Source of the DNA: Callorhinchus milii
Taxonomy: Eukaryota
Direction: 5' to 3'
Length of the DNA stretch: 64,000 nt
Assembly: GCF_018977255.1 (NCBI RefSeq)
Contig: NW_024704752.1
Location: 620,001 to 684,000 of the forward strand
Shown here: in pieces, positions 16,050 through 64,000 of the stretch
How positions within the stretch are numbered: position 1 is the first letter of the stretch
Layout of the letters: each line of letters begins with the position of its first letter
The notes under the pieces: model-generated
What the model saw: only the letters and a program-made list of their open reading frames with translations
Told to the model about the DNA's origin: nothing
Databases searched by the model: none
Made by a program: the position numbers and the translations under genes

Positions 16050-19000
16050 ATGTATTATTTATTATTTGGGGTACTACTTGCTGGTTCTTTGCGGAAATCA
16101 AATGAAGAGAGCTGCAAACTTCGAGGGAATTTCAATTTGCCTGGAATATCTAGAGCTGGAGATATCATTCTGGGAGGAATCTTTAATGTACACGCTGATC
16201 GCTTTGAGCAAATCAATTTGTTTCGGAATGCGCCAGAAGTAACAAAATGCAAAAGGTGAGCTGAATATGTGACAAATGATCCTTAACATCTGACTCTCCT
16301 GATGGGGATGCGATTAATAACTTCCACTGCTATATGGCTGGATGTTCTATACTTAATATTTATTTAATAAATTTGGATTTAAAATGCATAGGAAACATTT
16401 GGAACCTCCAGGTATTCCGATATGTTTAAATATTTCACACTTTCTTGCCAAGAATAGTTAATTCACATTTGTTTTAACAGAAGATTGAAAATATTGTTAA
16501 CAAGAATATTGGCCTTCAAGAAGGAACTAGACAAACACCATAATGAACACCATAAAAAAGTCAGCTCCAGAGATGTAGGGAAAGGGGAATGAAAGCTTTA
16601 ATAAAGGTGTTCAAAATTCTGAGGGGTTTTGATGGAGTAGAGAGGGAGAAATAGTTTCCTCTGGCGGGTGGATCAATAACTGGAGGTCACAGATTTAAGA
16701 TGGTTGGCAAAAAAAACAGAGGGGAGATGAGGAGAAATGTTTTTACCCAGGGAGCTGTTATGGTATGGAATGTATTGCCTGAAAGGGTGGTTGAAGCAGA
16801 TTCGATAATAGCTTTCAATGAGGAATGAGATAAATACTCAGAAAGAAAAAAATTGCAGGGTTATGGGGTAAGAATTGGGGGAGTGGGACCAGTTGGTAGC
16901 TCTTTCAAAGAGCCGGCACAGCTGAATAGCCTCCTTCTGTGCTGTAAAATTATATGATTCTGTGAAAGGATTGCTCTTGAACCAGCATGCACAGACTTAT
17001 TCTGCCCATTGGCTGAATGGCCTTCTTTTGTGCCCTACATTTCTATGGTTCTGAGATACGCAAATCTTGATTGTTTGCCCTTTTTAAAGAAAGGGGAAAG
17101 ACACAAACATTTCCATGCTTAATATTTTGAACATATTTTGCTACGTTCCTTTTGGAAAAGTTTCTTTCATTCACCTTCATTCGAGGTCAGATGTTAATAA
17201 GTGACAAACATCTGGAGTGGGTGCTATGAAGCGTGGCAGTACAATGTAAGAGTGTAATAATAATATTTTTATTAACCTAAATGATCTGAGTTTGTTGCTC
17301 AGTTTTGATTTCAGAGAGTTTCGCCTGGTAAATGCCATGATATTTGCAATCGAGGAAATAAACCGGAATCAGACGTTACTCCCAGATGTTACGCTGGGAT
17401 ATAACATTTTTGATGACTGCGCTTCCGCTAGCATTGCCACCAAAGTCGCCCTGGGTCTCGTCAATGGCCAAGTGGAAGAAGAAAGCGATCCTCAGTGTGA
17501 AGGGCCTCCCCGTGTCCCTGCTCTTGTTGGTGGTGACGGATCATCAGAGTCTATAGCTGTAGCAAGGTCCATAGGTCCATTCAAAATCCCAATGGTAAGT
17601 TAAATCACGGTACCTTTCCCTTCCAGAAAAATATTGGTACCCAAATATATTATCCTAGCTGTACCTGTTGCAGCTTCGCTTACAACCAAAGGATCCAATA
17701 TGGAATGTAGATTGACACACAGACAGACACACAGACTGACATTTCGTCTTTATCTATACTCAGCTGGGAGGACTCCTGTGGGAGGACTCAATGGGCGAAA
17801 TCCTTTAATATATTTTCTCTCCCAGTCTCTATCTCTCTCTCAATCTCTCTCTCTCAATCTCACTCTCCCATTCTCTCTCTCTCTCACACACAGTCTCTCT
17901 CTTTCAGTCTGTCTGTCTGGCAGTCTTTCTCTGTTTCTCCCACAAAACACACAGTCACTACACTTTATAATATATTCTCTCACAGCCTATCCCACATGGG
18001 AGGACTCCAGCTCCCATGACAACTAGAAAAAGTGCCAGACATTTGTTGCAGAATATAGATGTATCTCTCTGAACCATGTGTGCTTTTGTCTGTCATGACA
18101 CAGTTGCAGAATAAGATGCATACCTCATATTTTACGGCTTAATTAAAGCATTTTTTAATATAGCTCATGAACGCTAGGAAATTCCCCCCCCAGAAAATAT
18201 GCCCATGACGCTGCCAGCTGCAAGACATTTCTGATGAGGGATATAAATCATGTCTGTATGTCAATCGGTTATTGCGTGATTGTCGGATACACTGACACAC
18301 AGACAGACATTATCGTTTTATTAGTATAGAAGAAGATTCTCTCCCACAGTCTGACAGATGTTTTGTCTGTAAGTCGGTATTATATACTGTATATCACAAT
18401 GGACATGATGACACAATGGATGATGTCACAACCGATTGTTGTAGGATACCTCATATTTTGGGGCTTAATTTTTAATATAGCTCATCAATGCACATCAAAA
18501 ATATGCCCATGACAGTGTCAGATGCAATCCCTTTCCGATGAGCTGTAAATCATGTTTCTATGTCAATCGGTTATTGCGTGATTGTCAGACACACTGACAG
18601 ACAGACAGACAGACATTGTTGTTTTATGAGTATAGATTATGCATAATATGTACTCAAAGAAACAAAATCAAAATGTGATAAAAATATTGAAGGAAAATAA
18701 ATGTTCAAGGTCAAGAGTTTTATTTTGCATTGAGAAATCAACAGCAAAGTACATTGAATAATTAATCCTAATACATTGGTGGGGGACCTAGTAAACTTGT
18801 GATAGTTTAATATTTTAGGTTATGGGTATGTGTGACACAATTAATCAAAGTGAACTTTTGGAGTTTCTATAGTTATTTTCATTCATCAAACGTATTCCCA
18901 GTATAGAATATTCTCATTCAAATCAGATAATGTCTCAGCACCTTGGATGGTCCTCCTGACATGAAAGGCGCTATATAAATGTAATTTTGTATTGTATAAT

Positions 19001-21657
19001 GTAATAACAAAACTGATTTTATGAATCACAGGTCAGCTACTTTTCCACATGTGCCTGTCTCAGTGATAGGAAAGAATATCCCACGTTTTACAGAACCATA
19101 CCCAGTGACTACCATCAGTCCAAGGCTTTAGCTCAAATCATTAAGAAGTTTGGATGGACGTGGATTGGGACTATCAGAAGCAACAATGACTATGGTAACT
19201 TTGGAATGCAGGCATTTGTAGACATTGCGCAGGAACTTGGCATTTGCATTGCCTTCTCGGAATCATTTTATAGAACTGATTCTCATGACAAGATAAGGAA
19301 AATTGTAAATATAATCAAAATATCAACCACAAAAGTCATCGTGGCGTTCACTGCCAAAAGAGAAATGCGGATATTACTCAAAGAAATGATACGTCAAAAT
19401 GTCACTGGAATTCAGTGGATAGGAACTGAATCATGGATAACAGCACAAATTATTTCTCCAGCCGAAGTCACTCGATTTCTCACTGGGGCAATTGGACCTT
19501 CAATTCCTTCGTTAGAAGTGAAAGGATTGCGAGAATTTCTGCTTAAAATCCATCCTTCTGGGTTTCCCGGAAACAGTTTAGTGAAGGAGTTTTGGGAAAC
19601 TGCGTTCAACTGTACTTTCTGGTCAGGAAACACAAGCCAAATAACTGCATACACATTGCAGCAATGCACCGGCAATGAAGATGTAACAGAAATACATAAT
19701 GCATATTCTGATGTATCTATGGATGGAAGTTCCTACAATGTATATAAAGCAGTGTACGCTGTGGCTCATGCACTTCACAATATGTTTTTGTGTGAGAAAG
19801 GAAAAGGACCATTTATAAACAACACCTGTGCACACTCATCAAATTTTCAACCATGGCAGGTTAGAGAATATAGATTCAATGAAATTATAATATAAATTGA
19901 CTAGTTATTTGTGGAACTTAATTTGGATCAAATTAACATGATTTGAAACCGTTTGACACATTATAACATTGTTGGTTTCTATTCTTGCAAAGCTTCTTCA
20001 TTACTTAGAGTCAGTAAATTTCACAACTAAATCAGGTGACACAGTTAATTTTGACGAAAATGGAGACTCAGTAGCAACGTACGACTTGGTAAACTGGCGA
20101 ATCAACTCGAAAGGCACTGCTGAAATTGGCACTATTGGCTTCTATGATGGTTCGGCATCTCTGGGTAATGAGTTAGTGGTGGATGAAGAGGTCATTGTAT
20201 GGAACGATGGTCAGAATGAGGTACAGTATTTTACCAGCTTGCATTGTGCTAAGATGAAACAAGGTTAATAATTTTAATACGGGTTAAAAATTAACTAATC
20301 TTCAACAGAAATTATGAACAGAACTTGTAAATACAAGAATAAATAAAACAACAATCATTGCATTTCACAACAGTGTCTTGTCACTTTGTCCGAAGCCATT
20401 GGATTTTCCTTGAAGTCTAAATGGTTGCCATTTTGTAGATGAATGGTGGAGAAAACTTTGCCCAAGGCAATATCCCACAAGCAGCCATAAAGTTAATGGC
20501 CAATTTAATTTTTATGTTGGAAGATGCCACGTGCTGTTTGCAGTGAGAGCTGTATTCCTGGGACAAGAAAAGTTGCCAGAAAAGGCCAACCCGTGTGTTG
20601 CTTTGACTGTACAGAATGTGCTGAGGGAGAAATCAGCAACATCACAGGTGAGTGTGAAATTCCTCTTCCTATTTAACGCTTCTCTTTCAAAAACTCCCTT
20701 TAGTAATATTCATGCCATACTTACTGAATTATCGCACCTTTCCCAGATTCCACAGACTGCATTAAATGCCCTGAACAATATTGGCCCAATCAGCAGAGAG
20801 ATCGTTGCCGACCAAAGGAAATAGAGTTCCTCTCCTTTACCGAAATGCTGGGAGGTGTATTGCTGACATTGGCTCTGGTGGGAGTGAGCACCACAATAAG
20901 TATTGCCATTGTCTTCTTCACACACAGAGACACTCCTATTGTTAAAGCCAACAATTCGGAGCTCAACTATCTGCTTCTCTTTGCATTAACGCTGTGTTTT
21001 CTGTGCTCAGTGACTTTCATTGGCGAGCCCTCAGTCTGGGCTTGCATGTTGTGCCACACAGCATTCGCTATCGCTTTCGTTCTCTGTATTTCCTGTATTT
21101 TGATTAAAACAATCCTTGTGATTCTGGCGTTTAAGGCAACTCTTCCAAACAACAACATGGCCAAATTGTTCGGGCCTGCTCAGCAGCGTTGGAGTGTATT
21201 CCTCCTTACCTCTGTTCAGTGCCTGATATGTACTCTCTGGTTAACTATATCACACCCATTTCCCATGAGAAACACAGAATATTACAGAGAGATTATCATT
21301 CTGGAATGTGACCTGGGCTCTGTGAGCGCCTTTTATTCTATGGCGGGATATATTGCTTTCCTGGCCGGAGTGAGCTTTGTGCTGGCGTTTCTAGCTCGGA
21401 AATTACCTGATAACTTTAATGAGGCTCAATGTATAACCTTTAGCATGCTCATCTTTTGTGCTGTTTGGATCACTTTTATACCAGTTTACATCAGCTCTCC
21501 TGGGAAATACACCGTTGCTGTCGAAGTCTTTGCTATTTTAGCCTCGAGTTTTGGGTTATTGTTTTGTATTTTTGTTCCTAAATGTTACATTATTTTGATA
21601 AAACCTGAAATGAATACCAAAAAACACTTGATGGGCAAAGTACCTGTAAATAAATAA
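16050..21657 (+). CDS. G2: V2R/OlfC-family class C GPCR, 6 exons, 862 aa
   Basis: Exons 16050-16255, 17303-17594, 19032-19859, 19993-20220, 20524-20647, 20747-21657; sum 2589 nt, in frame; VFT + CRD + 7TM motifs; C-terminus GKVPVNK. Confidence 0.95.
16590..16962 (+). mobile_element. CR1 LINE 3' end
   Basis: aggtgttcaaaattctgaggggttttgat...tggaatgtattgcctgaaagggtggttgaagcag...gcctccttctgtgctgtaa. Confidence 0.85.
17652..18638 (+). mobile_element. Tandem Helentron/HINE-like non-autonomous units
   Basis: Start ctagctgtacc...gcttcgct; three ends of the form (acag)n-acatt-cgttttat-agtataga (17760, 18330, 18638); 18115-18330 and 18450-18638 are direct repeats. Confidence 0.55.
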
Positions 21658-22893
21658 TCACTGCCCATTACAGGTGTACTTTGGGAGGAACAATAATGTA
21701 AACACTTGTTTGTTTCTTCATTAAAGACAAAAAGAAAAAAACATGTAAAATGTTTCATATGTATTATTGCATTGTTTATTGTCGCATTTTCACATAATTA
21801 AGTAATATTTTAACATGTCAAGTTTAATGTTGAAATTGAGCCGAATGTAATCAAACACAATTAAACATGTTCATATAATCAAATAATGGGAACCTTGATA
21901 TGTCACATTTAATGATGCGTTCGAGCTAAAAGTAATACAACGCTTTGCATTTAAGTCTTGGGTTATTGCTTTATTGGCTGCCAATTTGGTGTCAGCCTGT
22001 CTCTGTTGTTCTCAAGATATTAAACCGAGGATCAATCCACCCTTTCAGAAGGATGTCAAGCACCATTCCAAAAGATGAAGAGGTAACTCCCAAAATGTCC
22101 CATAAAGTGGTCAACAATCCCCAAACAAAATTGGTTACTCACTTCATGCGTATTTGTGGGAAGGTTTCCTGTCACATTTCCTTACAAATAGATAGTTATT
22201 GCACAAAGTAAAAATCCCGGGATGTGCTGTGAGAACCTTCAAGCACATGATAAGGTTCTATATCAGGTAACGTACTGATTTGTTCTCTTATGGATGATTA
22301 TTCCTTTCTCTTTTGGAATAGCACCATGGGATTGTCAAGATCCACCAGCATGGGGAGGTAGGACCTCGGTTTACCTATCATCTGAAGAATGGCATCTCCA
22401 TTCAAGGTGGCAGTCTCCCATTACTGCATCGGGATATTCTTAGACAATGATAGTAACCCCCAGAGACATTTAATTCATATTAATTATTTCATTTGTTCAC
22501 GTCACTGAATATTTTTGAAAGAATATTGCTTCTTATAACTGTCAAAATTGTCTTAAAAATACCTTTGTAGCAGAGAAGAGGATAGCCACATGTTAGGGAT
22601 TTTCCATATTAAAGGCAGATCAGTACAGGTGGAATATTTGCATGTTGTTATACAAAAAATGCAATCATGATACACAGAAGCTGTTGTATTTATTTATGTT
22701 TCCATATGCAAGTGGATGATTGCCCCTTGGGCTCTTACGGTGTACTTACACTTTATATTCTAAAACTGAAAGTGGGCATGTCTCACAAGTGGATATTGGT
22801 TTGATGAACTATATATACACACAGATGTACAGGCACACGTGTAATACACAGCACAGATTCACAATGCCAAGGAATCAACAGAGAAGCTCTGTG

Positions 22894-25800
22894 ATGTTCA
22901 GCCCATATGTGTGGCTGCTCATTGCTTGTTGTGTTTGGGGATCCCAGGGAAAGCATTGCAGGCTCCAAGGCAAGTTCAATCTATCGGAAATATCCAAAGA
23001 TGGCGATATCGTTCTAGGAGGTATCTTTGATGTACACGTTGATCACTTTGAACAAATGAATACGTTTCATACTTCCCCGGAAGAAACTAAATGCAAAAGG
23101 TGAGCTCAGTAATGTTAGGGACCATCATATGATCTGAACTGGATAATCACTTGAGTAAAACAATACATACTGGAATATAGCTCGAAGGTGGAATAACAGT
23201 AAATATGAGCAGGGATAACAGGAATTAGGATGACAGAGATCTCACAGATACCATGGGAATAAACTGTACCTTTAGATTCTATTCATTCATGTGCCGCATT
23301 TATCAAATTTCTTTCTATTTTATAAATGTTGATAAGTACCATAAATCTATACAGCACAATATTTAGTCATCTTCCAGAAGGCTGATGCCTTCATCTGTCT
23401 TTACTTCATGTAATTCATGGAAAATTAATACTGTATACTGTTGTCAACTTAATTAATGAGTTAATCCCAGCCCTCTGAGTTGCTCCCTTCTTGAAGGATG
23501 CTAAAGAAATGAAATATTAGTACTGTTCATGTTGTTGTAATGATGCGCAGTGCATTGCACATGAAGGTACTTGGTTAGTTATTGTGCATTTTATCATTCA
23601 GCGGAATCTTATTACAATGTAAATTGTAACCTGGTAGGAAGTCTGGCTCAATTGGCAGCACTCGTGCTGTATTTCAGAAGGCTGTGTGTTCATTCCTCTA
23701 CTTTAGGATTTGGATCTTACAGCCTAGACTGAAAGTGCAATGAAGTGCTGAGGGGACGTATTGCATTGCGAGAGGTGTCCTGATTCGGATAAAATGTTAT
23801 AAACCAAGGTCTTATTTGCATGTTCATGTGAATATTAAAGGTGGACGGAGAATTTTAATAGACTTGAGAGTTTCTCACATTTTCTGGCCAACAATCATTC
23901 AGTTCAAGGCTATTCCCAACAGCCGTGGAACCCAATAATTTATTATTGCTATTGAGTGCATTCCGTCTAATGGAAATAATATTACTTACATTTGAGAAAG
24001 TGTCTTTCACCTCGAGAGGAACATCTCGAAGCGCTCATTGTGTTCCCTGCAAACTGGTTTTGTTGGCCCATTATTGTTATAAAGCACATATTGTTAAAAC
24101 TGCCATGGAATGTAAGGGATTCTGAAATATATTTATATTCTACATAAATTATGGATTTATCACCCAGTTTCGATTTTAGAGCCTTCCGTTTTGTTAATAC
24201 AATGGTATTTGCAACAGAAGAAATAAACCAGAACCCGGCACTGCTTCCTGATATTACTCTGGGATATAAGATTTATGATGCCTGTGGATCTTCCAATATT
24301 GCCACTAAAGTAGCACTGAGCTTTGTGAACGGTCAAGGAGCAACAGAGGATGACCATAACTGTGAAGGGCCTCCTAATGTCCCAGCTCTTGTTGGTGGTG
24401 ATGGTTCCTCAGTTTCTATAGCTGTTGCAAGGTCAATTGGTCCATTCAAAATCCCAATGGTACGTTATCATTTTCATATACATAGTTGGTAATTCTCCTC
24501 AAAAATTAACATTTACCCAAATACTTAAATATCAAAACGTTAAAACCTGGAATAAAAATATACAGTTAAATATTCATGTATTTTGTTTATTGTTCGTAAG
24601 AGATCGAAATTGTTCTATTATAATAATAACATTGTTTGGGTTCCAAGCAAAAAAGTTGAAGGCTCCTTACCTAGCCTTATGTGATTGGTAGCTATTCAAG
24701 TATTGTTAATATTGTAAAAAATTATATTCATCAAATGTAAATAAAATACAAACTGTTTTTATTCTGATCCTGACTATTTTCTGTCAAAATCTCTAATCAA
24801 CTGAAGGTCAGTTACTTCTCCACCTGCGTCTGTCTCAGTGACAGGAACGAATATCCCACATTTTACAGAACTATACCCAGTGACTACCATCAGTCCAAGG
24901 CTTTAGCTCAAATCATTAAGAAGTTTGGATGGACGTGGATTGGGACTATCAGAAGCAACAATGACTATGGTAACTTTGGAATGCAGGCATTTGTAGACAT
25001 TGCGCAGGAACTTGGCATTTGCATTGCCTTCTCGGAATCATTTTCCAGAACTGATTCTCATGAAAAGATAAGAAACATTGTAAATATAATTAAATTGTCG
25101 ACCACAAAAGTTGTGGTGGCTTTTGCTGCCCCGAGGGAAATCCAGTTATTACTCAAAGAAGTAATACGACAAAACCTCACTGGAATACAGTGGGTGGGAA
25201 CTGAAGCCTGGATAACAGCCCAACCTATTGCCCCAAATGAAAGTGCGAGATTTCTTATTGGAGCAATTGGCCCAGCGATTCCTTCAGCAGAAGTAAAGGG
25301 ATTGCAGGAATTCCTTCTGAAAATTCATCCGTCTAAGTTTCCCGGAAATAGTTTAGTAAAGGAGTTTTGGGAAACTGCGTTCCAATGTAGTTTCTGGTCA
25401 GGAAACACAAGCCAAACAAACACAACATCCACATTGCAGCAATGCACCGGCAAAGAAGATGTAACAGAAATACACAATGGATATTCTGATGTAACTATGG
25501 ATGGAATTTCCTACAACGTATACAAAGCGGTGTACGCTTTAGCTCATGCACTTCACAATCTGCTTTTGTGTGAGAGAGGAAAAGGACCATTTATGAACAA
25601 CACCTGTGCACACACATCAAATTTTCAGCCATGGCAGGTAAGGAAACATTCGTACATAAAACATATCTGTATTGGTAACCAATGCTCTGTGTATTTTTTG
25701 AATTGTGTCAACCTACTGACGATTGTTAAGTTACTAACCATCTCATATAATAAACATTATCGTTCATGTAATGTGACGTTATGATTCCTCAATGCTGCCT

Positions 25801-27860
25801 TACATTTGATCATATTCTTTGATATTGTTGTACAGATTCTCCATTACCTACAGTCAGTAAATTTTACATCTAAATCCGGTGACAGAATTTATTTTGATGA
25901 AAACGGTGACCCCGTGGCCAAATATGACTTGATAAACTGGCAAAAGAATTTGAAAGGCGTTGCTGAAACTCGTGTAATTGGCTTCTACGATGGTTCCGCA
26001 TCTCCAAGCCGGGAGCTTACGGTGAATGAGGAGGCTATCGTGTGGAGCAATGGTCAAACTGAGGTGTTTATCTGTCTGCTTTAGAAAATAAACAATTACC
26101 ATGAAGGAGAATGTCAAACAATTCTGAAGTAGGAACCCAATTGTTAGTCGATTGGTGGATCACTCTTCGGGGAGTAAAAATTCCTTCAAAAAATATAATA
26201 AATTTACTATTTGTTCACTCCATCCACGACTGTTTGTGGGACGCTGCTGCGCGCAATTGGCTGCTGCATTTTGCCCAGAAAACATGCAGTCAATTCACTT
26301 TACAGCATATTCTGTGAAGAGCTTTGAGACATCTCAAAGGCATGATAAGGCACTATATCAATGCAAGGATTATACTTTTATGATTATAAAACATTAAAGC
26401 AAATTGTATTGATATCGTGCCCTTCACATACCATAGCGACTTTGAGTGTTTACAGTGGAGGCACTGAGGTGGGGGAATGAGGGAGGGGGGAGGTTACTGT
26501 CGGTGAGGAAGGTTCTGACATTCAACTTGAAGACCAACAAAGGGGGTGAGATTGAGGTGTGCATGGAGGCAGTTTCAGAGTTCAGGTGTAGAATTAAACA
26601 GCTTTGAGACAATACATCTTTATAATCAGTTCATTTGTGTTGTTTTGAAAATATGCATTGACTAAAGCCATTACTGATTGATTCATCTGCATCATTTTAT
26701 TTGACAAGTTTTATTTTTATTCTGAGATCCCACGTGCGGTTTGCAGTGAGAGCTGTATTCCTGGAACAAGAAAAGTTGCCAGAAAAGGCCAACCCGTGTG
26801 TTGCTTTGACTGTACAGAATGTGCTGAGGGAGAAATCAGCAACATCACAGGTGAGTGTAAAATTCCTCTTCCTATTTAACGCTTCTCTTTCAAAAACTCC
26901 CTTTAGTAATATTCATGCCATACTTACTGAATTATCGTACCTTTCCCAGATTCCACAGACTGCATTAAATGCCCTGAACAATATTGGCCCAATCAGCAGA
27001 GAGATCGTTGCCTACCAAAGGAAATAGAGTTCCTCTCCTTTACCGAAATGCTGGGAGGTGTATTGCTGACATTGGCTCTGGTGGGAGTGAGCACCACAAT
27101 AAGTATTGCCATTGTCTTCTTCACACACAGAGACACTCCTATTGTTAAAGCCAACAATTCTGAGCTCAGCTATCTGCTTCTCTTTGCATTAACGCTGTGT
27201 TTTCTGTGCTCAGTGACTTTCATTGGCGAGCCCTCAGTCTGGGCTTGCATGTTGTGCCACACAGCATTCGCTATCGCTTTCGTTCTCTGTATTTCCTGTA
27301 TTTTGATTAAAACAATCCTTGTGATTCTGGCGTTTAAGGCAACTCTTCCAAACAACAACATGGCCAAATTGTTCGGGCCTGCTCAGCAGCGTTGGAGTGT
27401 ATTCCTCCTTACCTCTGTTCAGTGCCTGATATGTACTCTCTGGTTAACTATATCACACCCATTTCCCATGAGAAACACAGAATATTACAGAGAGATTATC
27501 ATTCTGGAATGTGACCTGGGCTCTGTGAGCGCCTTTTATTCTATGGCGGGATATATTGCTTTCCTGGCCGGAGTGAGCTTTGTGCTGGCGTTTCTAGCTC
27601 GGAAATTACCTGATAACTTTAATGAGGCTCAGTGTATAACCTTTAGCATGCTCATCTTTTGTGCTGTTTGGATCACTTTTATACCAGTTTACATCAGCTC
27701 TCCTGGGAAATACACCGTTGCTGTCGAAGTCTTTGCTATTTTAGCCTCGAGTTTTGGGTTATTGTTTTGTATTTTTGTTCCTAAATGTTACATTATTTTG
27801 ATAAAACCTGAAATGAATACCAAAAAACACTTGATGGGCAAAGTACCTGTAAATAAATAA
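22894..27860 (+). CDS. G3: V2R/OlfC-family class C GPCR, 6 exons, 863 aa
   Basis: Exons 22894-23099 (alternative in-frame ATG 22864), 24168-24459, 24807-25637, 25836-26063, 26727-26850, 26950-27860; sum 2592 nt; C-terminus GKVPVNK. Confidence 0.95.
26128..26375 (+). mobile_element. Headless SINE shared in intron 4 of G3/G4/G5/G6
   Basis: Same position in the paralogs: 33648-33890, 41598-41805, 54037-54270. Confidence 0.85.
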
Positions 27861-29745: not shown

Positions 29746-29824
29746 CAGATGCAGCGACACATACAATATACAGCACAGTTTCATGATGACAAGGGATCAG
29801 CAGCGGTTACCGAGAAGCTCTGTG

Positions 29825-43746: not shown

Positions 43747-43869
43747 GCACTGCCCATTACAGGTGTACTTTGGGAGGAATAATAATGTAAACACTTTTTA
43801 TGCTTTCATTAAATGCAAAAATAAAACAACCACATAAACAATGTGTCATATTTGTAATGGAATTGATAA

Positions 43870-45205: not shown

Positions 45206-45207
45206 CA

Positions 45208-46637: not shown

Positions 46638-46639
46638 AA

Positions 46640-50205: not shown

Positions 50206-53200
50206 ATGTTCAGCCCATATGTGTGGCTGCTCATTGCTTGTTGTGTTTGGGGATCCCAGGGAAAGCATTGCAGGCTCCAAGGCAAGTTCAATCTATCGGA
50301 AATATCCAAAGATGGAGATATCGTTCTAGGAGGTATCTTTGATGTACACGTTGACCGTTTTGAACAAATGAATACATTCGTTACTGCTCCAGAAGAAACA
50401 AAATGCAAAAGGTGAGCTCAGTAATGTTAGGGACCATCGTATGATCAGAATTTAATAATAATAATGATCCTTGCATTTGATACAGCGCCTTATCACATCT
50501 TCGAGACGTCTCAAAGCGGTTCACAAGTTATACTGTAAAGTGAATTGACTGCATATTTAGTGGGCAAAAGGCTTCAGCCAATTGTGCACAGCAGCGTCCC
50601 ACAAACTGTCGTGGATTGAAATGACCAAATTATTATCATTACAATTTTTGAAGGAAATCTTACTCCCAGAAAAGCGATCTGCCAATCGACTAATGACCAG
50701 GTTCCTATTTAGTGCTGGTAAACAGAGGAGTGTGGGGTAAGGAAACTTGCCCAACGTTTCGCCCTGCTCACGAGTTAATCCAACGTCACTCACTTGCAAG
50801 TCAAGTGCTCTAACTACTGAGCTGCAAAACTACAATTACAGCATTAATGTAAGTGGAGGTGATCAATCCTCCCAGGTCTATTTTAGTAAAAGTTATATAT
50901 TTAATAATGTTGAACCCCATTAGTTTGTGAGTGATTTATTATTCAAAATAATTCTGAAGTGTTCAACACCATTTGTTGGCTTTAAAATAACACATTTATT
51001 CAGACTGCAAGCCAAAATAAGATTCAGCAAAGAATTACATGGACAGTTTTCCGTTTCCTATTTTCGTAAAAATTCACTGTCCTGATAGGCGTATTATCAT
51101 GTTCTTATCAACTAAAACAAAAACTTGCATTACCAAGAAGCTCTGTGATGTATAGGCTCTATGTGGTGCTGCTCAGTGCCTGTTGTGTGTGGCAAAGTAA
51201 CAGGGAAAGGATTTGAGGCTGGAACGGAAATTCAATCTATCCGAAATATCCATATTTCCGGCAGGGCAGTGTCTTGAAGAGCTTAACGGTGACTTAGTGT
51301 GAGCCCTTTTGCTTGGGAGATGAGTTATTAAACTAAGACCTTGTCTGCTTGCTGAATAATAATAATAATAGTAATAATAATCCTTGCATTTGATATAGCG
51401 CTTTTCACGTCTTCTCTATGTCTCAAAGCGCTTCACAGAATATACTGTAAAGTGAATTGACTGTATATTTGTGGGCGAACGCGGCCGCCAATTGCGCACA
51501 GCAGCGTCCTACAAACAGTCCAGGAATGAAAATGACCAATTTATTATTGTTTTTTGTTTTTTGGAGGGATTATTATTAGATTAGATTATTAGATTAAGGA
51601 AATTTGCCCAAGGTTTCGCAATGCCTAGAATTGAACTCAGGTCTCTCACTTGCAAAGCAAGTGTTCTAACCACTGAGCTATAGGACTGAAGTGGGCATGA
51701 AAGATTTGCTGGGATTTTTGTAAAAGAGAAATGCTTTCAGACCTTCTTTATGTCACAGGCGCTATCACAAACATTAGGTTTATTATTGCCTTCGTGGAAT
51801 GCATTTGGCCCAATGAAAAGTAACATTACTTACGTTTACAACAGCGCCTTTCACCTCGAGAGGACATCTAAAGGTGCACCACTGGGTTTTCTGTGCAAAG
51901 CAGTGATTGTGGTCTCACAGGCCCATTCTATTCAAAAAGCACCTTATTGAAGCTGTAATACAATATACAGGACTCTGATATACCTGTAACATTAATGGTG
52001 GATTTCTCGTGCAGTTTGGATTTTAGAGCCTTCCGACTGGTGAATACGATGATATTTGCAATAGAGGAAATAAACCAGAACCCTGCACTGCTTCCTGATA
52101 TTACTCTGGGATATAAGATTTATGATGACTGCGGATCTTCCAATATTGCCACTAAAGTAGCACTGAGCCTTGTGAACGGTCAAGGAGCAACAGAGGATGA
52201 CCATAACTGTGAAGGGCCTCCTAATGTCCCAGCTCTTGTTGGTGGTGATGGATCCTCGGAGTCCATAGCTGTTGCAAGGTCAATTGGTCCATTCAGAATC
52301 CCAATGGTACGTTATCACATTCATATTGGTGCAAAGTCAGTTACTCTCTGAACAGAAAATAAATATTTAACATTTCACAAACATTTAAATCTAAAACCAA
52401 TACAAATATTGTGGATTAAATATATAATGATGTATTCACGTCTGTTATATGTTAAACATTGTAGTAATAAATGGAAATTGTTCCATTCTTCTTAATTTAT
52501 CTTATTTATTGTTGCGTCTCTAACACTCCACACCTCCCCTCCCTCCAAAAACAATGACAGCGTCTTACTTAAGGACACCTTAGTTGATGATTAACTATAC
52601 TGGAATGTTTGAGATTGGAAACTGTAATACTCATCAAACGTGTGTAAAACAAAAATGTTTCTATTCAGATCCGAACTGTTTTCTGTCTAAATCTCTAATC
52701 AACTGCAGGTCAGTTACTTCTCCACCTGCGTCTGTCTCAGTGACAGGAACGAATATCCCACCTTTTACAGAACCATACCCAGTGACTACCATCAGTCCAA
52801 GGCTTTAGCTCAAATCATTAAGAAGTTTGGATGGACGTGGATTGGGACTATCAGAAGCAACAATGACTATGGTAACTTTGGAATGCAGGCATTTGTAGAC
52901 ATTGCGCAGGAACTTGGCATTTGCATTGCCTTCTCGGAATCATTTTATAGAACAGATCCACTTGAAAAGATAAGCAACATTGTAAATATAATTAAGTTAT
53001 CGAACACAAAAGTTGTGGTGGCTTTTGCTGCCCGTATCGAAATGCAATTATTACTCAAAGAAGTAATACGACAAAACCTCACTGGAATACAGTGGGTGGG
53101 AACTGAAGCCTGGATAACAGCCCAACTTATTGCCCCAAATGAAAGTGCGAGATTTCTTATTGGAGCAATTGGCCCAGCGATTCCTTCAGCAGAAGTAAAG

Positions 53201-55757
53201 GGATTGCAGGAATTCCTTCTGAAAATTCATCCGTCTAAGTTTCCCGGAAATAGTTTAGTTCAGGAGTTTTGGGAAACTGCGTTCCAATGTAGTTTCTGGT
53301 CAGGAAACACAAGCCAAACAAACACAACATCCACATTGCAGCAATGCACCGGCAAAGAAGATGTAACAGAAATACACAATGGATATTCTGATGTAACTAT
53401 GGATGGAATTTCCTACAACGTATACAAAGCGGTGTACGCTTTAGCTCATGCACTTCACAATCTGCTTTTGTGTGAGAGAGGAAAAGGACCATTTATGAAC
53501 AACACCTGTGCACACTCATCAAATTTTCAGCCATGGCAGGTAAGGAAACATTCGTACATAAAACATATCTGTATTGGTAACCAATGCTCTGTGTATTTTT
53601 TGAATTGTGTCAACCTACTGACGATTGTTGTTACTAACCATCTCATATAATAAACATTATCGTTCATGTAATGTGACGTTATGATTCCTCAATGCTGCCT
53701 TACATTTGATCATATTCTTTGATATTGTTGTACAGATTCTCCATTACCTACAGTCAGTAAATTTTACATCTAAATCCGGTGACAGAATTTATTTTGATGA
53801 AAACGGTGACCCCGTGGCCAAATATGACTTGATAAACTGGCAAAAGAATTTGAAAGGCGTTGCTGAAACTCGTGTAATTGGCTTCTACGATGGTTCCGCA
53901 TCTCCAAGCCGGGAGCTTACGGTGAATGAGGAGGCTATCGTGTGGAGCAATGGTCAAACTGAGGTGTTTATCTGTCTGCTTTAGAAAAAAAATGGAATTT
54001 CAATTGCTATGAAGGACAATGTCAAACAATACTTTCGTAGGAACTCAGTTGTTAATCGATTGGTGGATCACTCTTCTGGGTGTAATAATTCCTTCAAAAA
54101 AATAAATAATTTGGGCACTCCATCCACGACTGTTTGTGGGACGCTGCTGTGCGCAATTTTGCTCAGAAACTTGCAGTCAATTCAATTTACAGTATATTCT
54201 GTGAGGCACATTGAGACATCTCAAACATATGATAAGGCACTATATAAAATGGCGCTATATCTGATGCAAGCATCATTAGTTTATGATTATAAAACATGAA
54301 AGCAAATTGTATTGATATCGTGGCCTTCACATACCATTGCGACTTTGAGTGTTTACAGTGGAGGCACTGAATTGGGGGAATGAGGGAGGGGGGAGGTTAC
54401 TGTCGGTGAGGAAGGTTCTGACATTCAACTTGAAGACCAACAAAGGGGGTGAGATTGAGGTGTGCATGGAGGCAGTTACAGAGTTTAGGTGTAGAATTAA
54501 GCAGCTTTGAGACAATACATCTTTATAATCAGATCATTTGTGTTGTTTTGAAAACATGCATTGACTAAAGCCATTACTGATTAGTTCATCTGCATCATTT
54601 TATGTGATAAGTTTTATTTTTATTCTGAGATCCCACGTGCGGTTTGCAGTGAGAGCTGTATTCCTGGAACAAGAAAAGTTGCCAGAAAAGGCCAACCCGT
54701 GTGTTGCTTTGACTGTACAGAATGTGCTGAGGGAGAAATCAGCAACATCACAGGTGAGTGTGAAATTCCTCTTCCTATTTAATGCTTCTCTTTCAAAAAC
54801 TCCCTTTAGTAATATTCATGCCATACTTACTGAATTATCGTACCTTTCCCAGATTCCACAGACTGCATTAAATGCCCTGAACAATATTGGCCCAATCAGC
54901 AGAGAGATCGTTGCCGACCAAAGGAAATAGAGTTCCTCTCCTTTACCGAAATGCTGGGAGGTGTATTGCTGACATTGGCTCTGGTGGGAGTGAGCACCAC
55001 AATAAGTATTGCCATTGTCTTCTTCACACACAGAGACACTCCTATTGTTAAAGCCAACAATTCTGAGCTCAGCTATCTGCTTCTCTTTGCATTAACGCTG
55101 TGTTTTCTGTGCTCAGTGACTTTCATTGGCGAGCCCTCAGTCTGGGCTTGCATGTTGTGCCACACAGCATTCGCTATCGCTTTCGTTCTCTGTATTTCCT
55201 GTATTTTGATTAAAACAATCCTTGTGATTCTGGCGTTTAAGGCAACTCTTCCAAACAACAACATGGCCAAATTGTTCGGGCCTGCTCAGCAGCGTTGGAG
55301 TGTATTCCTCCTTACCTCTGTTCAGTGCCTGATATGTACTCTCTGGTTAACTATATCACACCCATTTCCCATGAGAAACACAGAATATTACAGAGAGATT
55401 ATCATTCTGGAATGTGACCTGGGCTCTGTGAGCGCCTTTTATTCTATGGCGGGATATATTGCTTTCCTGGCCGGAGTGAGCTTTGTGCTGGCGTTTCTAG
55501 CTCGGAAATTACCTGATAACTTTAATGAGGCTCAATGTATAACCTTTAGCATGCTCATCTTTTGTGCTGTTTGGATCACTTTTATACCAGTTTACATCAG
55601 CTCTCCTGGGAAATACACCGTTGCTGTCGAAGTCTTTGCTATTTTAGCCTCGAGTTTTGGGTTATTGTTTTGTATTTTTGTTCCTAAGTGTTACATTATT
55701 TTGATAAAACCTGAAATGAATACCAAAAAACACTTGATGGGCAAAGTGTCCAACTGA
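50206..55757 (+). CDS. G6: V2R/OlfC-family class C GPCR, 6 exons, 861 aa
   Basis: Exons 50206-50411, 52015-52306, 52709-53539, 53736-53963, 54630-54753, 54853-55757; sum 2586 nt; C-terminus GKVSN; flanks paralogous to G4. Confidence 0.95.
50452..50832 (-). mobile_element. Full-length SINE in G6 intron 1
   Basis: Orthologous position to 30073-30445. Confidence 0.9.
51130..51253 (+). pseudogene. Relic exon-1 fragment in G6 intron 1
   Basis: [22 protein letters not shown] followed by ttcaatctatccgaaatatcca, homologous to exon 1; a shorter piece is in G8 at about 61853-61902. Confidence 0.8.
51356..51687 (-). mobile_element. SINE (G6-specific)
   Basis: Empty site cttgctgaagtgggcatg is present in G8 (about 61998-62016); ctgaa is duplicated at both ends in G6. 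Confidence 0.9.
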
Positions 55758-56872: not shown

Positions 56873-58203
56873 ATGTATGTGGGAAATATGTTTTACTTTT
56901 TTCTGTTAGAATTGCTCAGACTTGAGGCTGGATGGGAAAGCGGTGAATATAGTTGTAAACTTCAAGGGAAGTTCGATTTACCTGAACTGTCAAAGGACGG
57001 AGACATCATTCTGGGGGGACTTTTTAACTTGCACATGGACAGGGTTGAGAATGTGCATTCCTTTACTGTCCGGCCAAAAGCAGAACAGTGCAAACGGTGA
57101 GTGGATTCTCAGAGTAATTTATAAAAAGCTATAGTTAAGTGTATAGTAAATGTATATGGGTGTCTGACACATGTGGAAACCCATCGACATGCCTTCGAGT
57201 ATCCAAACCAAGCTGAGATTTCCATGCATTCTGCCTACAAGTCCTGTAGCTCAGTGGTTGGAGCACTCGCCTCGCAAGTGAGAGACCTTGGCTCGATTCC
57301 TGGCTGGGTGAAATGTTGGTCAAGTTTCTTTACTCCACATGCCTCTGTTTACCTTGCAGTAAGGAGAAACAGGGTTAATAGGCGATTGTCAGATCAGTTT
57401 ACTGGGAGTAATAATTGCTTTAAAAAAAATGGGTCACTTGAATGCACGACTGTGGAGGGACGCTGCTCTGCGCAATTAGCTGCCGCTTTTCACCCACAAA
57501 ATATGCAGTCAATTTACCTTGCAGTATATTCTGTGAAGCGCTTTGAGACGTCTCGAAGACGTGAGAAGGTGCTATATCAAATGCAAGGATTATTTACAAA
57601 TGGGAATCCCAGCACTAGATTGTTGGAATGGAATGCGGGCTCTCTCCCTGGAGGGAAGCATCCTGCCTACCTAATTCCGGAAAGTATTAAGCGAAGATTA
57701 GCAAGAGCCAAGGGTTGGAGAGCCCAGAGGGTGCGTTCGGTTACTGCTGGAGTCTAACCAGTTAAAACCACATAGCTCACCATTGGTATTAATGTCCGGC
57801 AAACTTTCCCGCTACTTGTCCAGTGAGGAGCACCCTATCCGTTAGTGCTTTGGCTGCAGTGTTACCAGGAGTTGAGTGAGATGACTCCCTGCCCCAGTGA
57901 CTGGTCTGCTCTTCCAGGTCCTGGTTTGTGCTGGCGTTTCTTGCTCGGAAATTACCTGATAAGTTTAATGAGGCTCAGTGTATAACCTTTAGCATGCTCA
58001 TCTTTTGTGCTGTTTGGGTCACTTTTATACCAGTTTACATCAGCTCTACTGGGAAATACACCGTTGCTGTCAAAGTCTTTGCTATTTTAGCCTCGAGTTT
58101 CGGGTTATTGTTTTGTATTTTTGTTCCTAAATGTTACATTATTTTGATAAAACCTGAAATGAATACCAAAAAAGCACTTGATGAGCAAAGTACCTGTAAA
58201 TGA
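56873..58203 (+). pseudogene. G7: internally deleted V2R (intact G5-type exon 1 plus only the 3' third of the 7TM exon)
   Basis: Exon 1 56873-57096 is nearly identical to G5 exon 1. Intron 1 sequence runs into the exon-6 fragment at about 57925 ([17 protein letters not shown]). Exons 2-5 are absent. Substitutions N>K, I>V, P>T, E>K and a +1 insertion near the C-terminus. Confidence 0.88.
57241..57594 (+). mobile_element. Full-length SINE in G7 intron 1
   Basis: A/B boxes, core, tail; flanked by tacaa on both sides; absent from the equivalent G5 site. Confidence 0.9.
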
Positions 58204-58541
58204 ATAAGCACTGCACATTACAGGTATATGATCATGTGTAACAGAATGTAAACATATCATGTCTTCATTAAATGCAAAAAAGAAAATAACTGAGTTGAAT
58301 ATCACATATATTTAATATTTCATATGTATAATGGGATTATGCTTGTTAGCATTTTCACATAATCAGTAATAGGATCCCTAATCTGTCACAATTAATGTGC
58401 TTTTCAGGTAAAAGAATGTATTTGAGTCCAGGGTTATTGCTGTGGAGTGCATAGAATGGGCAAAACTACAGTTGTCTATTGTGTAAGTTTTGCTGTTTGA
58501 CTATTGTCGGCCAAAGTCTATGGGAGTAATTTCAACACAGT

Positions 58542-58995: not shown

Positions 58996-58999
58996 ACGC

Positions 59000-60110: not shown

Positions 60111-60111
60111 A

Positions 60112-61207: not shown

Positions 61208-64000
61208 ATGTTCAGCCCATATGTGTGGCTGCTCATTGCTTGTTGTGTTTGGGGATCCCAGGGAAAGCATTGCAGGCTCCAAGGCAAGTTCAATCTATCG
61301 GAAATATCCAAAGATGGCGATATTGTTTTAGGAGGTATCTTTGATGTACACGTTCATCCCTTTGAACAAATGAATACGTTCGTTACTGCTCCAGAAGAAA
61401 CAAAATGTAAAAGGTGAGCTCAGTAATGTTAGGGACCATCGTATGATCAGAATTTAATAATAATAATGATCCTTGCATTTGATACAGCGCCTTATCACAT
61501 CTTCGAGACGTCTCAAAGCGGTTCACAAGATATACTGTAAAGTGAATTGACTGCATATTTTGTGGGCGAAATGCGTCAGCCAATTGTGTACAGCAGTGTC
61601 CCACAAACTGTCATGGATTGAAATGACCAAATTATTATTATTACTATTGTGTTGAAGGAAATCTTACGCCCAGAAAGCGATCTGCCAATCGACTAATGAC
61701 CAGGTTCCTATTTAGTGCTGATAAACAGAGGAGTGTGGGGTAAGGAAACTTGCCCAACGTTTCGCCCTGCTCGCTAGTTCAACCAACGTCACTCGCTTGC
61801 AAGTCAAGTGCTCTAACTATTGAGCTGCAAAACTACAATAACAGCATTAACTGGGAAAGGATTTGAGGCTCAAATGGAAATTCAATCTATCCGAAATATC
61901 CATATTTCCGGCAGGGCAGTGTCTTGAAGGGCTTAACGGTAACTTATTGTGAGCCCTTTTGCTTGGGAGATGAGTTATTAAACCAAGACCTTGTCTGCTT
62001 GCTGAAGTGGGCATGAAAGATTTGCTGGGATTTTTGTAAAAGAGAAATGCTTTCAGACCTTCTTTACGTCACAGGCGCTATCACAAATACTAGGTTTATT
62101 ATTGTTCTTTTTGCCACATGGGCTATGTCAAATGCCAGATTAATTATTATTATTATTATTGTTGAATGCATTTGGTCCAATGAAAAGTAACATTACTTAC
62201 ATTTACAACAGCCCCTTTCACCTCGAGAGGACGTCTCAAAGTGATTCACTAGGTTTTCTGTGAAGTGTAGTGATTGTGGTCTCACAGGCCCATTGTTTTT
62301 AGAAAGCACCTTATTGAAGCTGACATACAATATACTGGACTCTGATATACCTGTAACATTAATGGTGGATTTCTCTTTCAGTTTCAATTTTAGAGCCTTC
62401 CGTCTGGTCAATACGATGATGTTTGCAATAGAGGAAATAAACCAGAACCCGGCACTGCTTCCTGATATTACTCTGGGATATAAGATTTATGATGATTGCG
62501 GATCTTCCAATATTGCCACTAAAGTAGCACTGAGCCTTGTGAACGGTCAAGGAGCAACAGAGGATGACCATAACTGTGAAGGACCTCCTAATGTCCCAGC
62601 TGTTGTTGGTGTTGCTGGATCCTCGGAGTCCATAGCTGTTGCAAGGTCAATTGGTCCATTCAGAATCCCAATGGTACGTTATCACATTCATATTGGTGCA
62701 AAGTCAGTTACCCTCCGAATAGAAAATAAATATTTAACATTTCACAAACATTTAAATCTAAAACCAATACAAATATTGTGGATTAAATAAATAAATTATG
62801 TATTCACCTCTGTTTTCTTTTATTTAATTGTAGCAAAAATAGAAATTGTTCTATTCTTCTTCAATTACTTACACATAGTTTGGTCTCTATCACTCCACCC
62901 TTTCTCCAAAAACAATGATGGCATCTTACTTAAGGAAGCCTCGTTGGTGATTAACTATAATGGAATGGTTGAGAATGGAATATTCATCAACAACAACCAC
63001 AACAAAATGACATTTATAGAGCGCCTTTCAGGTCGGGAGGACGTGCCAAAGTGCTGAAGAGTCAGGTGTCGGGGCCCAAGCATGGGGGAGGTGTGGAGTC
63101 GGGGTGAGGGAAGGCAGAGAGGTGGGAGGGAGACCTAAGGCATGGTCAAAGAGCAGGCTCTTGAGACTGGCCTTGAAGGAGGCAAGGGATGGCCTTCAAG
63201 GTGAGGACGAGGATCTTGAACTCGATCCTCTGACGGATGGGGAGAGAGGGTGGGACTGATGGGGTTACAGAGCCTGGTGCGTGAAAGTACATGAGCTTCA
63301 GTGTTTTGGATGATCTGCAGCTTGTGAAGGGAAGTATATGCAAAAAAAAATTTTCTAAATATTCTGATCCTAACTGTTTTCCGTCTAAATCTCTACTCAA
63401 CTGAAGGTCAGTTACTTATCCACATGCGTCTGTCTCAGTGACAGGAACGAATATCCCACCTTTTACAGAACCATACCCAGTGACTACCATCAGTCCAAGG
63501 CTTTAGCTCAAATCATTAAGAAGTTTGGATGGACGTGGATTGGGACTATCAGAAGCAACAATGACTATGGTAACTTTGGAATGCAGGCATTTGTAGACAT
63601 TGCGCAGGAACTTGGCATTTGCATTGCCTTCTCGGAATCATTTTATAGAACAGATCCACTTGAAAAGATAAGCAACATTGTAAATATAATTAAGTTATCG
63701 AACACAAAAGTTGTGGTGGCCTTTGCTGCCCGTACTGAAATGCAATTATTACTCAAAGAAGTAATACGACAAAACCTCACTGGAATACAGTGGGTGGGAA
63801 CTGAAGCCTGGATAACAGCCCAACTTATTGCCCCAAATGAAAGTGCGAGATTTCTTATTGGAGCAATTGGCCCAGCGATTCCTTCAGCAGAAGTAAAGGG
63901 ATTGCAGGAATTCCTTCTGAAAATTCATCCGTCTAAGTTTCCCGGAAATAGTTTAGTTAAGGAGTTTTGGGAAACTGCGTTCCAATGTAGTTTCTGGTCA
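61208..64000 (+). CDS. G8: V2R/OlfC-family class C GPCR, 5' part (runs off window)
   Basis: Exons 61208-61413, 62382-62673, 63407 to window end; open frame so far; paralog of G4/G6. Confidence 0.92.
61454..61835 (-). mobile_element. Full-length SINE in G8 intron 1
   Basis: Orthologous position to the G4/G6 copies. Confidence 0.9.
62988..63335 (-). mobile_element. L2 3' fragment in G8 intron 2
   Basis: [19 protein letters not shown] and a (ttg)n tail; absent from G4/G6 intron 2. Confidence 0.85.

Follow-up and report, generated by a model that had tools for sequence, protein, structure and literature searches.

In the protocadherin and UGT1A variable-first-exon clusters, a single set of constant exons is used by all the variable exons via splicing. 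Whole-protein or 7TM-weighted trees are the usual source for the history of the V2R/OlfC genes, which is interpreted as birth-and-death with species-specific expansions. In fugu, protocadherin paralogs with divergent 5′ parts are described as >99% identical in their 3′ regions (PMC1852091), and in the zebrafish NLR-B30.2 family conversion is described as acting differently on two domains (PMC4852459). For the catfish OlfC genes, GENECONV matches were reported and concerted evolution was invoked for species-specific clades (PMC6588630). The elephant shark has V2R/OlfC subclades of up to 12 genes (Sharma et al., PMC6368271), and the term "conversion" has 0 occurrences in the accessible text of that paper.

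The window that we analysed, the whole stretch of 64,000 nt, holds 6-exon V2R/OlfC genes arranged in tandem on the + strand (G1–G8). G1–G6 look intact, only a remnant is left of G7, and the window end truncates G8. In G3, the Pfam domains follow the exons in the order ANF_receptor (exons 2–4; E-values of 2.4e-13, 2.5e-51 and 3.6e-05, exon 4 alone being below the Pfam cut-off), NCD3G (exon 5; 1.4e-16) and 7tm_3 (exon 6; 8.2e-80). CaSR is the nearest solved class C receptor (exon 3, 3e-67 versus ~1e-31 to 1e-33 for mGluR and T1R), and the best homologs, with an identity of ≤71%, carry the names CaSR-like or vomeronasal type-2 receptor. By this domain order, the proximity to CaSR and the six intact coding exons, G1–G6 are predicted to be V2R/OlfC class C GPCRs. 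No RNA run containing the stretch was present among the runs listed.

We used G1 as the internal outgroup and G3 as the reference copy. Exons 1–2 (the heads) fall into three distinct types, as had been predicted: A (G3, G4, G6 and G8), B (G2) and C (G5 and exon 1 of G7). The 3′ flanks are of the VPVNK type in G2, G3, G5 and the G7 fragment, and of the VSN type in G4 and G6. The genes are as follows.

5194..12995, + strand: G1, 6-exon V2R/OlfC gene, intact and not part of the homogenised group (exons 5194-5402, 6707-6998, 8614-9417, 9822-10049, 11348-11471, 12097-12995)
16050..21657, + strand: G2, type-B head (head exons 16050-16255, 17303-17594, 19032-19859, 19993-20220) with a putatively converted exon 5–intron 5–exon 6 (exons 20524-20647, 20747-21657)
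22894..27860, + strand: G3, type-A head, VPVNK tail (exons 22894-23099, 24168-24459, 24807-25637, 25836-26063, 26727-26850, 26950-27860)
29825..36050, + strand: G4, type-A head, VSN tail; intron 5 interrupted by an insertion of ~706 bp (~34380-35085)
37718..43746, + strand: G5, type-C head (exons 37718-37941, 39039-39330) followed by a type-A body (exons 40271-41101, 41300-41527, 42629-42752, 42836-43746)
50206..55757, + strand: G6, type-A head, VSN tail
56873..58414, + strand: G7 remnant, type-C exon 1 (56873-57096), then a 3′ fragment of exon 6 (57925-~58200) and a VPVNK-type flank
61208..64000, + strand: G8, type-A head (exons 61208-61413, 62382-62673); exon 3 from 63407 is cut by the window end

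Splice sites and frame were checked exon by exon in G1–G6; AG/GT was found at every junction with no internal stops, and the window has 0 N letters. The original prediction had likened the array to a variable/constant cassette system. In the sense of protocadherins or UGT1 this is not the case, as each gene owns its exons 3–6, its AG/GT splice sites and its stop codon.

We observed that synonymous divergence is non-uniform along the gene pairs, as had been anticipated. Between G2 and G3 it was 0.50, 0.60 and 0.51 in exons 1, 2 and 4, versus 0.077 in exon 5 and 0.010 in exon 6; between G3 and G5 the values were 0.81 in both exons 1 and 2, 0.02 in exon 4 and 0.010 in exon 6. When exons 1+2 were compared with exon 6, Fisher's test gave p = 7e-33 (G2–G3) and 2e-55. 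The outgroup was without such unevenness across exons (control G1–G3, p = 0.28), the pS of G1 to G2–G6 being 0.58–0.90 across all exons and 0.71 in exon 6. The runs of identity also exceed chance in a Sawyer-type permutation on 1404 polymorphic sites, where none of the 5000 permutations reached the observed run in 7 of the 10 pairs, and 2, 3 and 47 of 5000 did so in the remaining three.

These genes could alternatively be recent whole-gene duplicates with heads that diverged fast under positive selection. Chemoreceptor binding domains are often fast-evolving, and at nt 241–360 of exon 3, nonsynonymous change exceeds synonymous change in the pair G4–G6 (8/94 versus 1/26). However, positive selection does not lift synonymous divergence to 0.5–0.8, nor does it render introns and promoters unalignable; even in the closest pair, G4–G6, introns 1, 2 and 4 are 76–81% identical, whereas exon 6 has 3 differences in 903 nt. 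We consider this explanation extremely unlikely.

The unevenness resolves into discrete blocks. One of them, exon 5–intron 5–exon 6, codes for the cysteine-rich and 7TM domains. Here, G2–G6 differ at 0–6 of 123 nt in exon 5 and at 3–12 of 903–909 nt in exon 6 (exon-6 pS of 0.010–0.020), with just 11 variable columns in the first 896 nt of the latter. The shared identity stops at ...ATGGGCAAAGT, beyond which two unrelated 3′ flanks follow, so that the near-identity of exon 5 and the 7TM exon, its abrupt end and the two flank types are all as originally described. Intron 5 is 97–99% identical in G2, G3, G4 and G6, and 74–78% in G5; the proposed co-conversion of introns 3 and 5 thus stands for intron 3 in G3–G6 and for intron 5 in these four genes, but not for intron 5 of G5. 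A second block comprises exon 3 from nt 361 to its end (pS of 0–0.010 among G3–G6), intron 3 (196–198 nt) and exon 4. It is 97–100% identical in G3–G6, whereas in G2 exon 4 is only 74–75% identical and intron 3 (133 nt) is unalignable, which agrees with the divergence of G2 claimed earlier. The tracts identified are given below.

22894..23025, + strand: exon-1 5′ tract (G3 copy), identical in G3, G4, G6 and G8; the longest G3–G4 run
19098-19269 (G2), 24873-25044 (G3), 32395-32566 (G4), 40337-40508 (G5, 1 difference), 52775-52946 (G6) and 63473-63644 (G8), + strand: copies of the 172-nt exon-3 block
25167..26100 (G3) and about 32690-33642 (G4), 40607-41529 (G5) and 53048-53988 (G6), + strand: exon 3 3′ part–intron 3–exon 4 block
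20505..21683, + strand: G2 conversion tract (~1.1–1.2 kb), from ~20 nt 5′ of exon 5 to ~26 nt 3′ of the stop codon, with intron 5 and exon 6 included

The tracts are ~130 nt to 1.2 kb long, and they end within introns or flanks, at the limits of homology. In exon 1 the first variable column is 129, and over the 400 nt further upstream, the identity of G3 to G4, G6 and G8 is only 70–72%. The G2 tail tract consists of perfect runs shared with G3 across 20563–21683, interrupted by 5 single differences; it is bordered on the left by an unalignable intron 4 and on the right by a 3′ flank that is 79% identical. As the introns are co-homogenised and the tract borders sit 20–40 nt within introns, we concluded that the copying took place at the DNA level. 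RNA- or cDNA-mediated conversion was rejected on these grounds, the edges of the tracts not being at exon boundaries. A signature of GC-biased conversion was absent from the exon-6 GC3 values (0.46–0.47 versus 0.41 in G1) and from the GC content of the converted intron 3 (0.31–0.32). Such a signature is frequent in converted tracts, but not obligatory.

The start of exon 3 was claimed to be near-identical over about 190 nt in G2–G6 and G8. This was borne out, and the length proved slightly generous: nt 67–238 form a 172-nt block with perfect identity in G2, G3, G4, G6 and G8 and 1 difference in G5 (1 variable column in 172). In G2 it is an island, 19098–19269, with diverged sequence on both sides. 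The left edge of the block, at nt 60–67 of exon 3, is equally sharp in G2 and G5, which could be taken as a sign that the identity is maintained by selection acting directly on the nucleotide sequence, such as on an exonic regulatory or RNA element. However, the pS of the block against G1 is 0.82 (29.2/35), and therefore it is not a constrained element; exon 6 is likewise saturated at synonymous sites against G1. Selection of this kind also does not fit with the inclusion of introns 3 and 5, nor with the exon-6 fragment of the G7 pseudogene, which is still 96–97% identical (9/276 differences to G3 and 10/267 to G4). We regard this explanation as very improbable. The G7 fragment is thus less homogenised than the intact genes.

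G5 requires an additional event. Its intron 4 aligns with the type-A intron 4 over the full length (74–93%), whereas its introns 1–2 are unalignable; hence its body would descend from type A, with a swapped head. The switch point lies between nt 60 and 67 of exon 3 (about 40330–40337). In the per-segment trees, G5 is placed outside for the head exons 1 and 2, but inside for exons 3 and 4. The AU test upheld the expected conflict between exon trees in one direction, as it rejected the head topology on exon 3 (p = 0.032) and exon 4 (p = 0.025), and did not do so in the other, the alternative being tolerated on the short head exons 1 (p = 0.06) and 2 (p = 0.116). The tracts of exon 5 and exon 6 are also separate in G5. 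Conversion alone, as originally put forward, does not explain this gene; a head swap is needed and intron 5 was not co-converted.

This raises the question of whether all the mosaics came from the breakpoints of unequal crossing-over or intragenic duplication (exon-block shuffling and chimeric genes) with no gene conversion. The chimera-like G5 speaks for it, as do the four combinations of head and 3′-flank types that occur and the resemblance of [G4,G5] and [G6,G7] to a duplicated two-gene unit (non-coding identity of ~89%). A single crossover, however, would leave everything downstream donor-like, yet diverged sequence lies on either side of the G2 tail tract, and likewise of the 172-nt block. 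Moreover, G5 is nearly identical to the other genes in exons 5 and 6, yet its intron 5 is at 74–78% with a 13-nt deletion, and intron 3 of G3–G6 (97–99%) lies between introns at 74–89% (intron 2, 74–79%; intron 4, 78–89%). An origin by crossing-over only is thus improbable.

Near-identical repeats of ~1 kb are a classic source of error, and the identical blocks could be an artefact of assembly or polishing in which copies were collapsed or corrected to a consensus. We compared the window with contigs assembled separately from the short reads of four samples. In all four, the 7TM region was a single unbranched contig of 742–892 nt with a depth of 137–212, versus ~8–11 for the G2-specific contigs. 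This is ~14–20× single-copy depth (depth is not a copy number), as expected only if many copies share those 31-mers. A 165-nt contig of run X4 begins exactly at 19098, with a depth of 105.6 versus ~7.6 for single-copy pieces, and contig ends coincide exactly with the block edges 19098 and 21661. G2-specific contigs (19820/19894–20574) cross the left edge of the G2 tail tract and reach 70 nt into the shared block in three of the four runs; for its right edge, a bridging contig was absent among the contig records listed. At four G2-private positions in exon 6 the contigs carry the majority letter, so these private variants are unconfirmed, and short-read contigs cannot tie a given head to its own tail across the ~900-nt identical block. 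The sequencing runs of other organisms contain 6–9% of the words of the stretch. Taking the depth, the crossing contigs, the coinciding ends and the N-free window together, we find an artefact very unlikely.

The array is a case of region-restricted concerted evolution of tandem V2R/OlfC genes, and the pattern is real and strong. The heads (exons 1–2, and in G2 also most of exons 3–4) are old paralog lineages, and the exon-1 part, the 172-nt exon-3 piece and the blocks from the 3′ part of exon 3 to exon 4 and from exon 5 to exon 6 have been overwritten between copies at the DNA level. Repeated region-restricted interlocus gene conversion, together with at least one old head swap (G5), is probably the best explanation (probability of about 0.8). 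There is good support for the original proposal that DNA-level conversion preserves a single signalling module while the heads stay divergent; it comes from the dS contrast, the co-homogenised introns, the tract edges, the permutation and Fisher's test. The donor, direction and timing of conversion and the role of selection are matters that we infer. Ectopic conversion would occur as misaligned tandem copies recombine or undergo repair, and at least one older unequal exchange may have joined a type-C head to the type-A body of G5. The process could be self-reinforcing, with the slowly evolving 7TM half remaining similar enough for further conversion and the ligand-binding parts escaping it, either because they had already diverged or because they were selected to differ. 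As a result, numerous receptors that differ in their binding heads would feed into one common signalling/dimerisation module.

As the G5 head/body switch sits at the left edge of the 172-nt block, this block might even serve as a shared homology hinge, recombining old heads onto a common homogenised body in a germline mix-and-match system; we offer this only tentatively and hold it to be rather doubtful. If it were true, the large V2R clades reported as species-specific in cartilaginous fish would mostly be an artefact of homogenised tails, with heads descending from lineages far older than the published trees suggest. If half of each gene is homogenised over perhaps 14–20 copies, whole-protein or 7TM-weighted trees would be biased for this array, making the heads seem too young and recent duplication too frequent, and trees would be better built from the unconverted head exons, as done for protocadherins (PMC1852091). 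The array is also a clean natural example for telling the parts of a class C chemoreceptor that can be homogenised (the CRD, the 7TM domain and the lobe-1 core) from those in which differences are retained (exons 1–2 and a patch in exon 3).

The block-wise extent was thought to be unusual. It is not, since the fugu protocadherins (PMC1852091) and the zebrafish NLR genes (PMC4852459) are comparable, and the process is already known from other receptor clusters. The protocadherins of fugu, zebrafish and human are likewise tandem receptors with 3′ parts homogenised down to synonymous sites, for which repeated region-limited conversion was inferred; there, however, the homogenised region is inside one large variable exon onto which a shared constant region is spliced (PMC1852091). 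The tracts in our array, in contrast, extend over multiple exons and introns, and each of the complete 6-exon genes owns its "constant" exons. The zebrafish NLR-B30.2 genes are likewise a large tandem family of receptors in which synonymous divergence is domain-specific and conversion affects part of the gene, but they are an immune family with other domains, and conversion was also proposed to spread variation of the recognition domain (PMC4852459), whereas here the recognition head mostly escapes conversion. The catfish OlfC genes belong to the same V2R/OlfC family; the account in the main text is without domain or block structure, or 7TM-specific homogenisation behind old heads (PMC6588630). 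In the TLR1/TLR6 and CEACAM paired receptors, conversion is similarly reported to limit the divergence of part of neighbouring genes, although these are two-gene or small families rather than a long array (PMC2077338, PMC7042247). Finally, the array resembles the protocadherin and UGT1A cassettes in presenting many N-terminal parts on one C-terminal module, but it does so without a single shared set of constant exons.

By translation, splice-site inspection and alignment of the window, which contains no N, we observed class C chemoreceptor genes of the V2R/OlfC type arranged in tandem on the plus strand. They are numbered G1 to G8 along the window; G1 served as outgroup and G3 as the reference copy. 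G1–G6 are complete six-exon models with AG/GT at all junctions and without internal stops, G7 is a remnant in which an exon 1 is followed by a 3′ piece of exon 6, and G8 is truncated by the window end. The spliced models were examined and searched exon by exon. Pfam assigned ANF_receptor to exons 2–4, NCD3G to exon 5 and 7tm_3 to exon 6; two long non-V2R ORFs of the window gave no Pfam match, and the G5–G6 spacer held no notable ORF. The genes, and the repeats and gene fragments lying among them, are as follows.

16050–21657, plus strand, gene G2
22894–27860, plus strand, gene G3
29825–36050, plus strand, gene G4
37718–43746, plus strand, gene G5
50206–55757, plus strand, gene G6
56873–58414, plus strand, remnant G7
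36950–37190, degenerate second G5-type exon 1, ~700 nt upstream of the real exon 1, without ATG and with 7 codons missing
31061–31150 (G4 intron 1) and 51136–51251 (G6 intron 1), short exon-1-like fragments found by tblastn
34380–35085, insertion of ~706 bp (GC 0.53) in G4 intron 5, dividing the homogenised exon 5–exon 6 block
6308–6596, C-rich tandem repeat in G1 intron 1, 18-bp unit, ~16 copies
1451–1805, 13134–13500, 30074–30446, 38163–38537, 50455–50834, 57240–57594 and 61457–61837, plus shorter copies, SINE-like repeats of ~370 bp

The 192-aa minus-strand ORF inside the G4 insertion has no Pfam match. The SINE-like copies are 72–88% alike and are placed in introns and spacers; several start with a tRNA-like head (ARAGORN: 13138, 30373, 30712, 57240), and the read depth of the family runs to thousands.

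We compared the genes by sliding identity against G3, by a feature-by-feature identity table and by Nei-Gojobori counts per exon. From these comparisons, we observed that exons 1–2, the ligand-binding head, fall into three types: A (G3, G4, G6 and G8), B (G2) and C (G5, together with exon 1 of G7). Synonymous divergence (pS) of the heads is 0.50–0.60 between B and A and 0.74–0.88 between C and A, the latter being as high as against the outgroup gene G1. In G2–G6, exon 6 shows 3–12 differences in 903–909 nt (pS 0.010–0.020; 11 variable columns in its first 896 nt) and exon 5 shows 0–6 differences in 123 nt. The exon-6 identity stops abruptly at ...ATGGGCAAAGT, after which two unrelated 3′ flanks follow. 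Nucleotides 67–238 of exon 3 form a 172-nt perfect match in G2, G3, G4 and G6; G8 is identical and G5 has 1 difference. Among G3–G6, identity is 97–100% across the segment that starts at exon-3 nt 361 and takes in intron 3 and exon 4, whereas G2 exon 4 is only 74–75% identical to theirs and G2 intron 3 is unalignable. The original prediction had described this same layout, namely a near-identical start of exon 3, a 3′ part of exon 3 to exon 4 shared by G3–G6 but not by G2, near-identical exons 5 and 6 with an abrupt end, and three types of exons 1–2; the measurements bear it out. Its statement that introns 3 and 5 are co-converted holds for intron 3 in G3–G6 and for intron 5 in G2, G3, G4 and G6, but not for intron 5 of G5, which is only 74–78% identical and carries a 13-nt deletion. 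The G7 fragment differs from the intact genes by 3–4%, that is, it is less homogenised, which fits either shorter homology or no selection.

Among the type-A genes, differences persist in the 3′ half of exon 1, in exon 2 and at exon-3 residues 80–116. The last of these is a variable patch within the homogenised exon 3, seen at 25047–25166 in G3 (exon-3 nt 241–360) and likewise in G4, G5, G6 and G8, and is densest at residues 108–116. Nonsynonymous changes outweigh synonymous ones in it (8/94 against 1/26 for G4–G6 and 8.5/93 against 1.5/27 for G4–G5), a hint of diversifying selection or of escape from conversion.

Alignment to CaSR, the nearest solved relative of exon 3 (3e-67), places residue 1 of exon 3 at CaSR 165 and the invariant block at CaSR 187–243. 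Within the block lie the counterparts of D190 and Y218, which have a role in ligand binding in CaSR. The homogenised exon 5–6 block corresponds to the entire cysteine-rich plus 7TM module.

The contrast between heads and exon 6 could reflect slow evolution of the latter. Comparing synonymous differences in exons 1+2 with those in exon 6, Fisher's test gave p = 7e-33 for G2–G3 and p = 2e-55 for G3–G5, whereas the G1–G3 control gave p = 0.28; exon 6 is therefore not intrinsically slow at silent sites. The 172-nt exon-3 block likewise has a pS of 0.82 against G1. A Sawyer-type permutation over 1404 polymorphic sites matched the observed value in 0 of 5000 replicates for 7 of the 10 pairs, and in 2, 3 and 47 of 5000 for the other three. 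The per-exon trees and synonymous comparison proposed in the original prediction showed divergence that is uneven along the genes and a G5 whose position shifts between blocks: it lies outside (G2, type A) for exons 1–2 and inside type A for exons 3–4. In AU tests, the head topology was rejected by the data of exon 3 (p = 0.032) and of exon 4 (p = 0.025); the converse topology was not rejected for exons 1 and 2, which are short (p = 0.06 and 0.116).

Identical blocks could also be produced by collapse or over-polishing of the assembly. We therefore looked at Logan contigs from four samples, all belonging to one study; the runs carry no record of library type, and their evenly covered introns and flanks suggest genomic DNA. 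G2-specific DNA was covered at a depth of ~5–18. The 7TM block appeared as one unbranched contig (20690–21581, or 20727/20690–21468) at depths of 212, 187, 137 and 151, which is ~14–20 times the single-copy depth, although contig depth in these data is not a copy number. A 165-nt contig at depth 106 starts at 19098, precisely where the exon-3 block begins; G2-specific contigs enter the shared tail block (exon 5–intron 5–exon 6) by 70 nt in three of the four runs and by 18 nt in the fourth, and the G2 3′-flank contig begins at 21661. Given these depths, contig ends at block edges and G2 junction contigs, an assembly artefact is unlikely. Many copies truly carry the identical block letters. Contigs of this kind cannot join a head to its tail across the identical block. 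The four exon-6 letters private to G2 were absent from the contigs of the four samples. Of the words sampled from the G2 stretch, 6–9% were present in runs X9–X20, which are labelled as other organisms (B–F).

Read depth is the basis for the genome-wide extent of tail sharing. At ≤71% identity, CaSR-like/V2R proteins from bowfin, reedfish, gar and sharks are the database entries most similar to exon 6. The exon-6 protein search for same-species V2R proteins sharing the tail, limited to a length range that does not take in full-length proteins, returned no match above 71% identity, and among representative proteins the best match was ≤73%; the 10 representatives inspected bear bony-fish names where an organism is given.

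The near-identical exon 5 of G5, lying between two diverged introns, suggested cDNA-mediated conversion. However, tract edges reach 20–40 nt into introns, and intron 3 and intron 5 have been converted along with the exons in other genes; these two findings exclude a spliced RNA template. In G2, the tail tract (~20505–21683) is flanked by an unalignable intron 4 on the left and a 79%-identical 3′ flank on the right, and the exon-3 block has diverged exon sequence on either side. Being bounded on both sides, these tracts indicate conversion and not a single crossover. In G5, intron 4 is alignable end to end with type-A intron 4 (74–93%), whereas introns 1–2 are unalignable; hence, by descent, the body belongs to type A, and the head has been swapped. 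This changeover falls at exon-3 nt 60–67, on the left border of the invariant block, and exon-centred tracts were superimposed on the swap afterwards. DNA-level gene conversion, as originally predicted, thus accounts for the bounded tracts and co-converted introns but is insufficient alone for G5. The data support repeated conversion with an added head-swap component.

The stretches 29250–43900 and 49650–58450, holding [G4,G5] and [G6,G7], resemble a duplicated two-gene unit with ~89% identical non-coding DNA; the exon-1 regions of G5 and G7 are 97.5% identical over 522 nt. The ~89% figure gives the background from which exon 6, at >99%, stands out.

Such a pattern probably arose as tandem copies misaligned and then repaired or recombined with one another. 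The recipient would be overwritten by heteroduplex tracts, short to ~1.2 kb, halting where homology stops, for example at the VPVNK and VSN types of 3′ flank or at G2 intron 4. Similarity in the conserved signalling half would stay high enough for it to serve as substrate, while heads might escape through divergence past the substrate limit or through selection for difference. No signature of GC-biased conversion was seen in the converted tracts. These observations are chiefly of value in two ways: they sound a caution for V2R phylogenies, and the array offers a clean natural map of receptor parts kept alike and kept different.

In the main texts covered by our literature search, we found no account of domain-restricted (7TM-specific) V2R/OlfC homogenisation; the supplementary conversion tables of PMC6588630 may be relevant to this point. 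Work on catfish OlfC reports GENECONV-positive events (PMC6588630), and Brykczynska et al. raise V2R conversion only as a caveat (PMC3590772). In elephant shark, Sharma et al. 2019 describe V2R subclades that are species-specific and number up to 12 genes, and the word ‘conversion’ does not occur in their paper (PMC6368271), nor in Zhang et al. 2022 (PMC9018814). The block-wise extent, which the original prediction considered unusual, has counterparts: regional conversion of the same kind is documented in protocadherin paralogs (PMC1852091) and zebrafish NLR genes (PMC4852459). The likeness to a variable/constant cassette system does not hold, as the array differs from the protocadherin/UGT1 arrangement in that every gene here has its own ‘constant’ exons.
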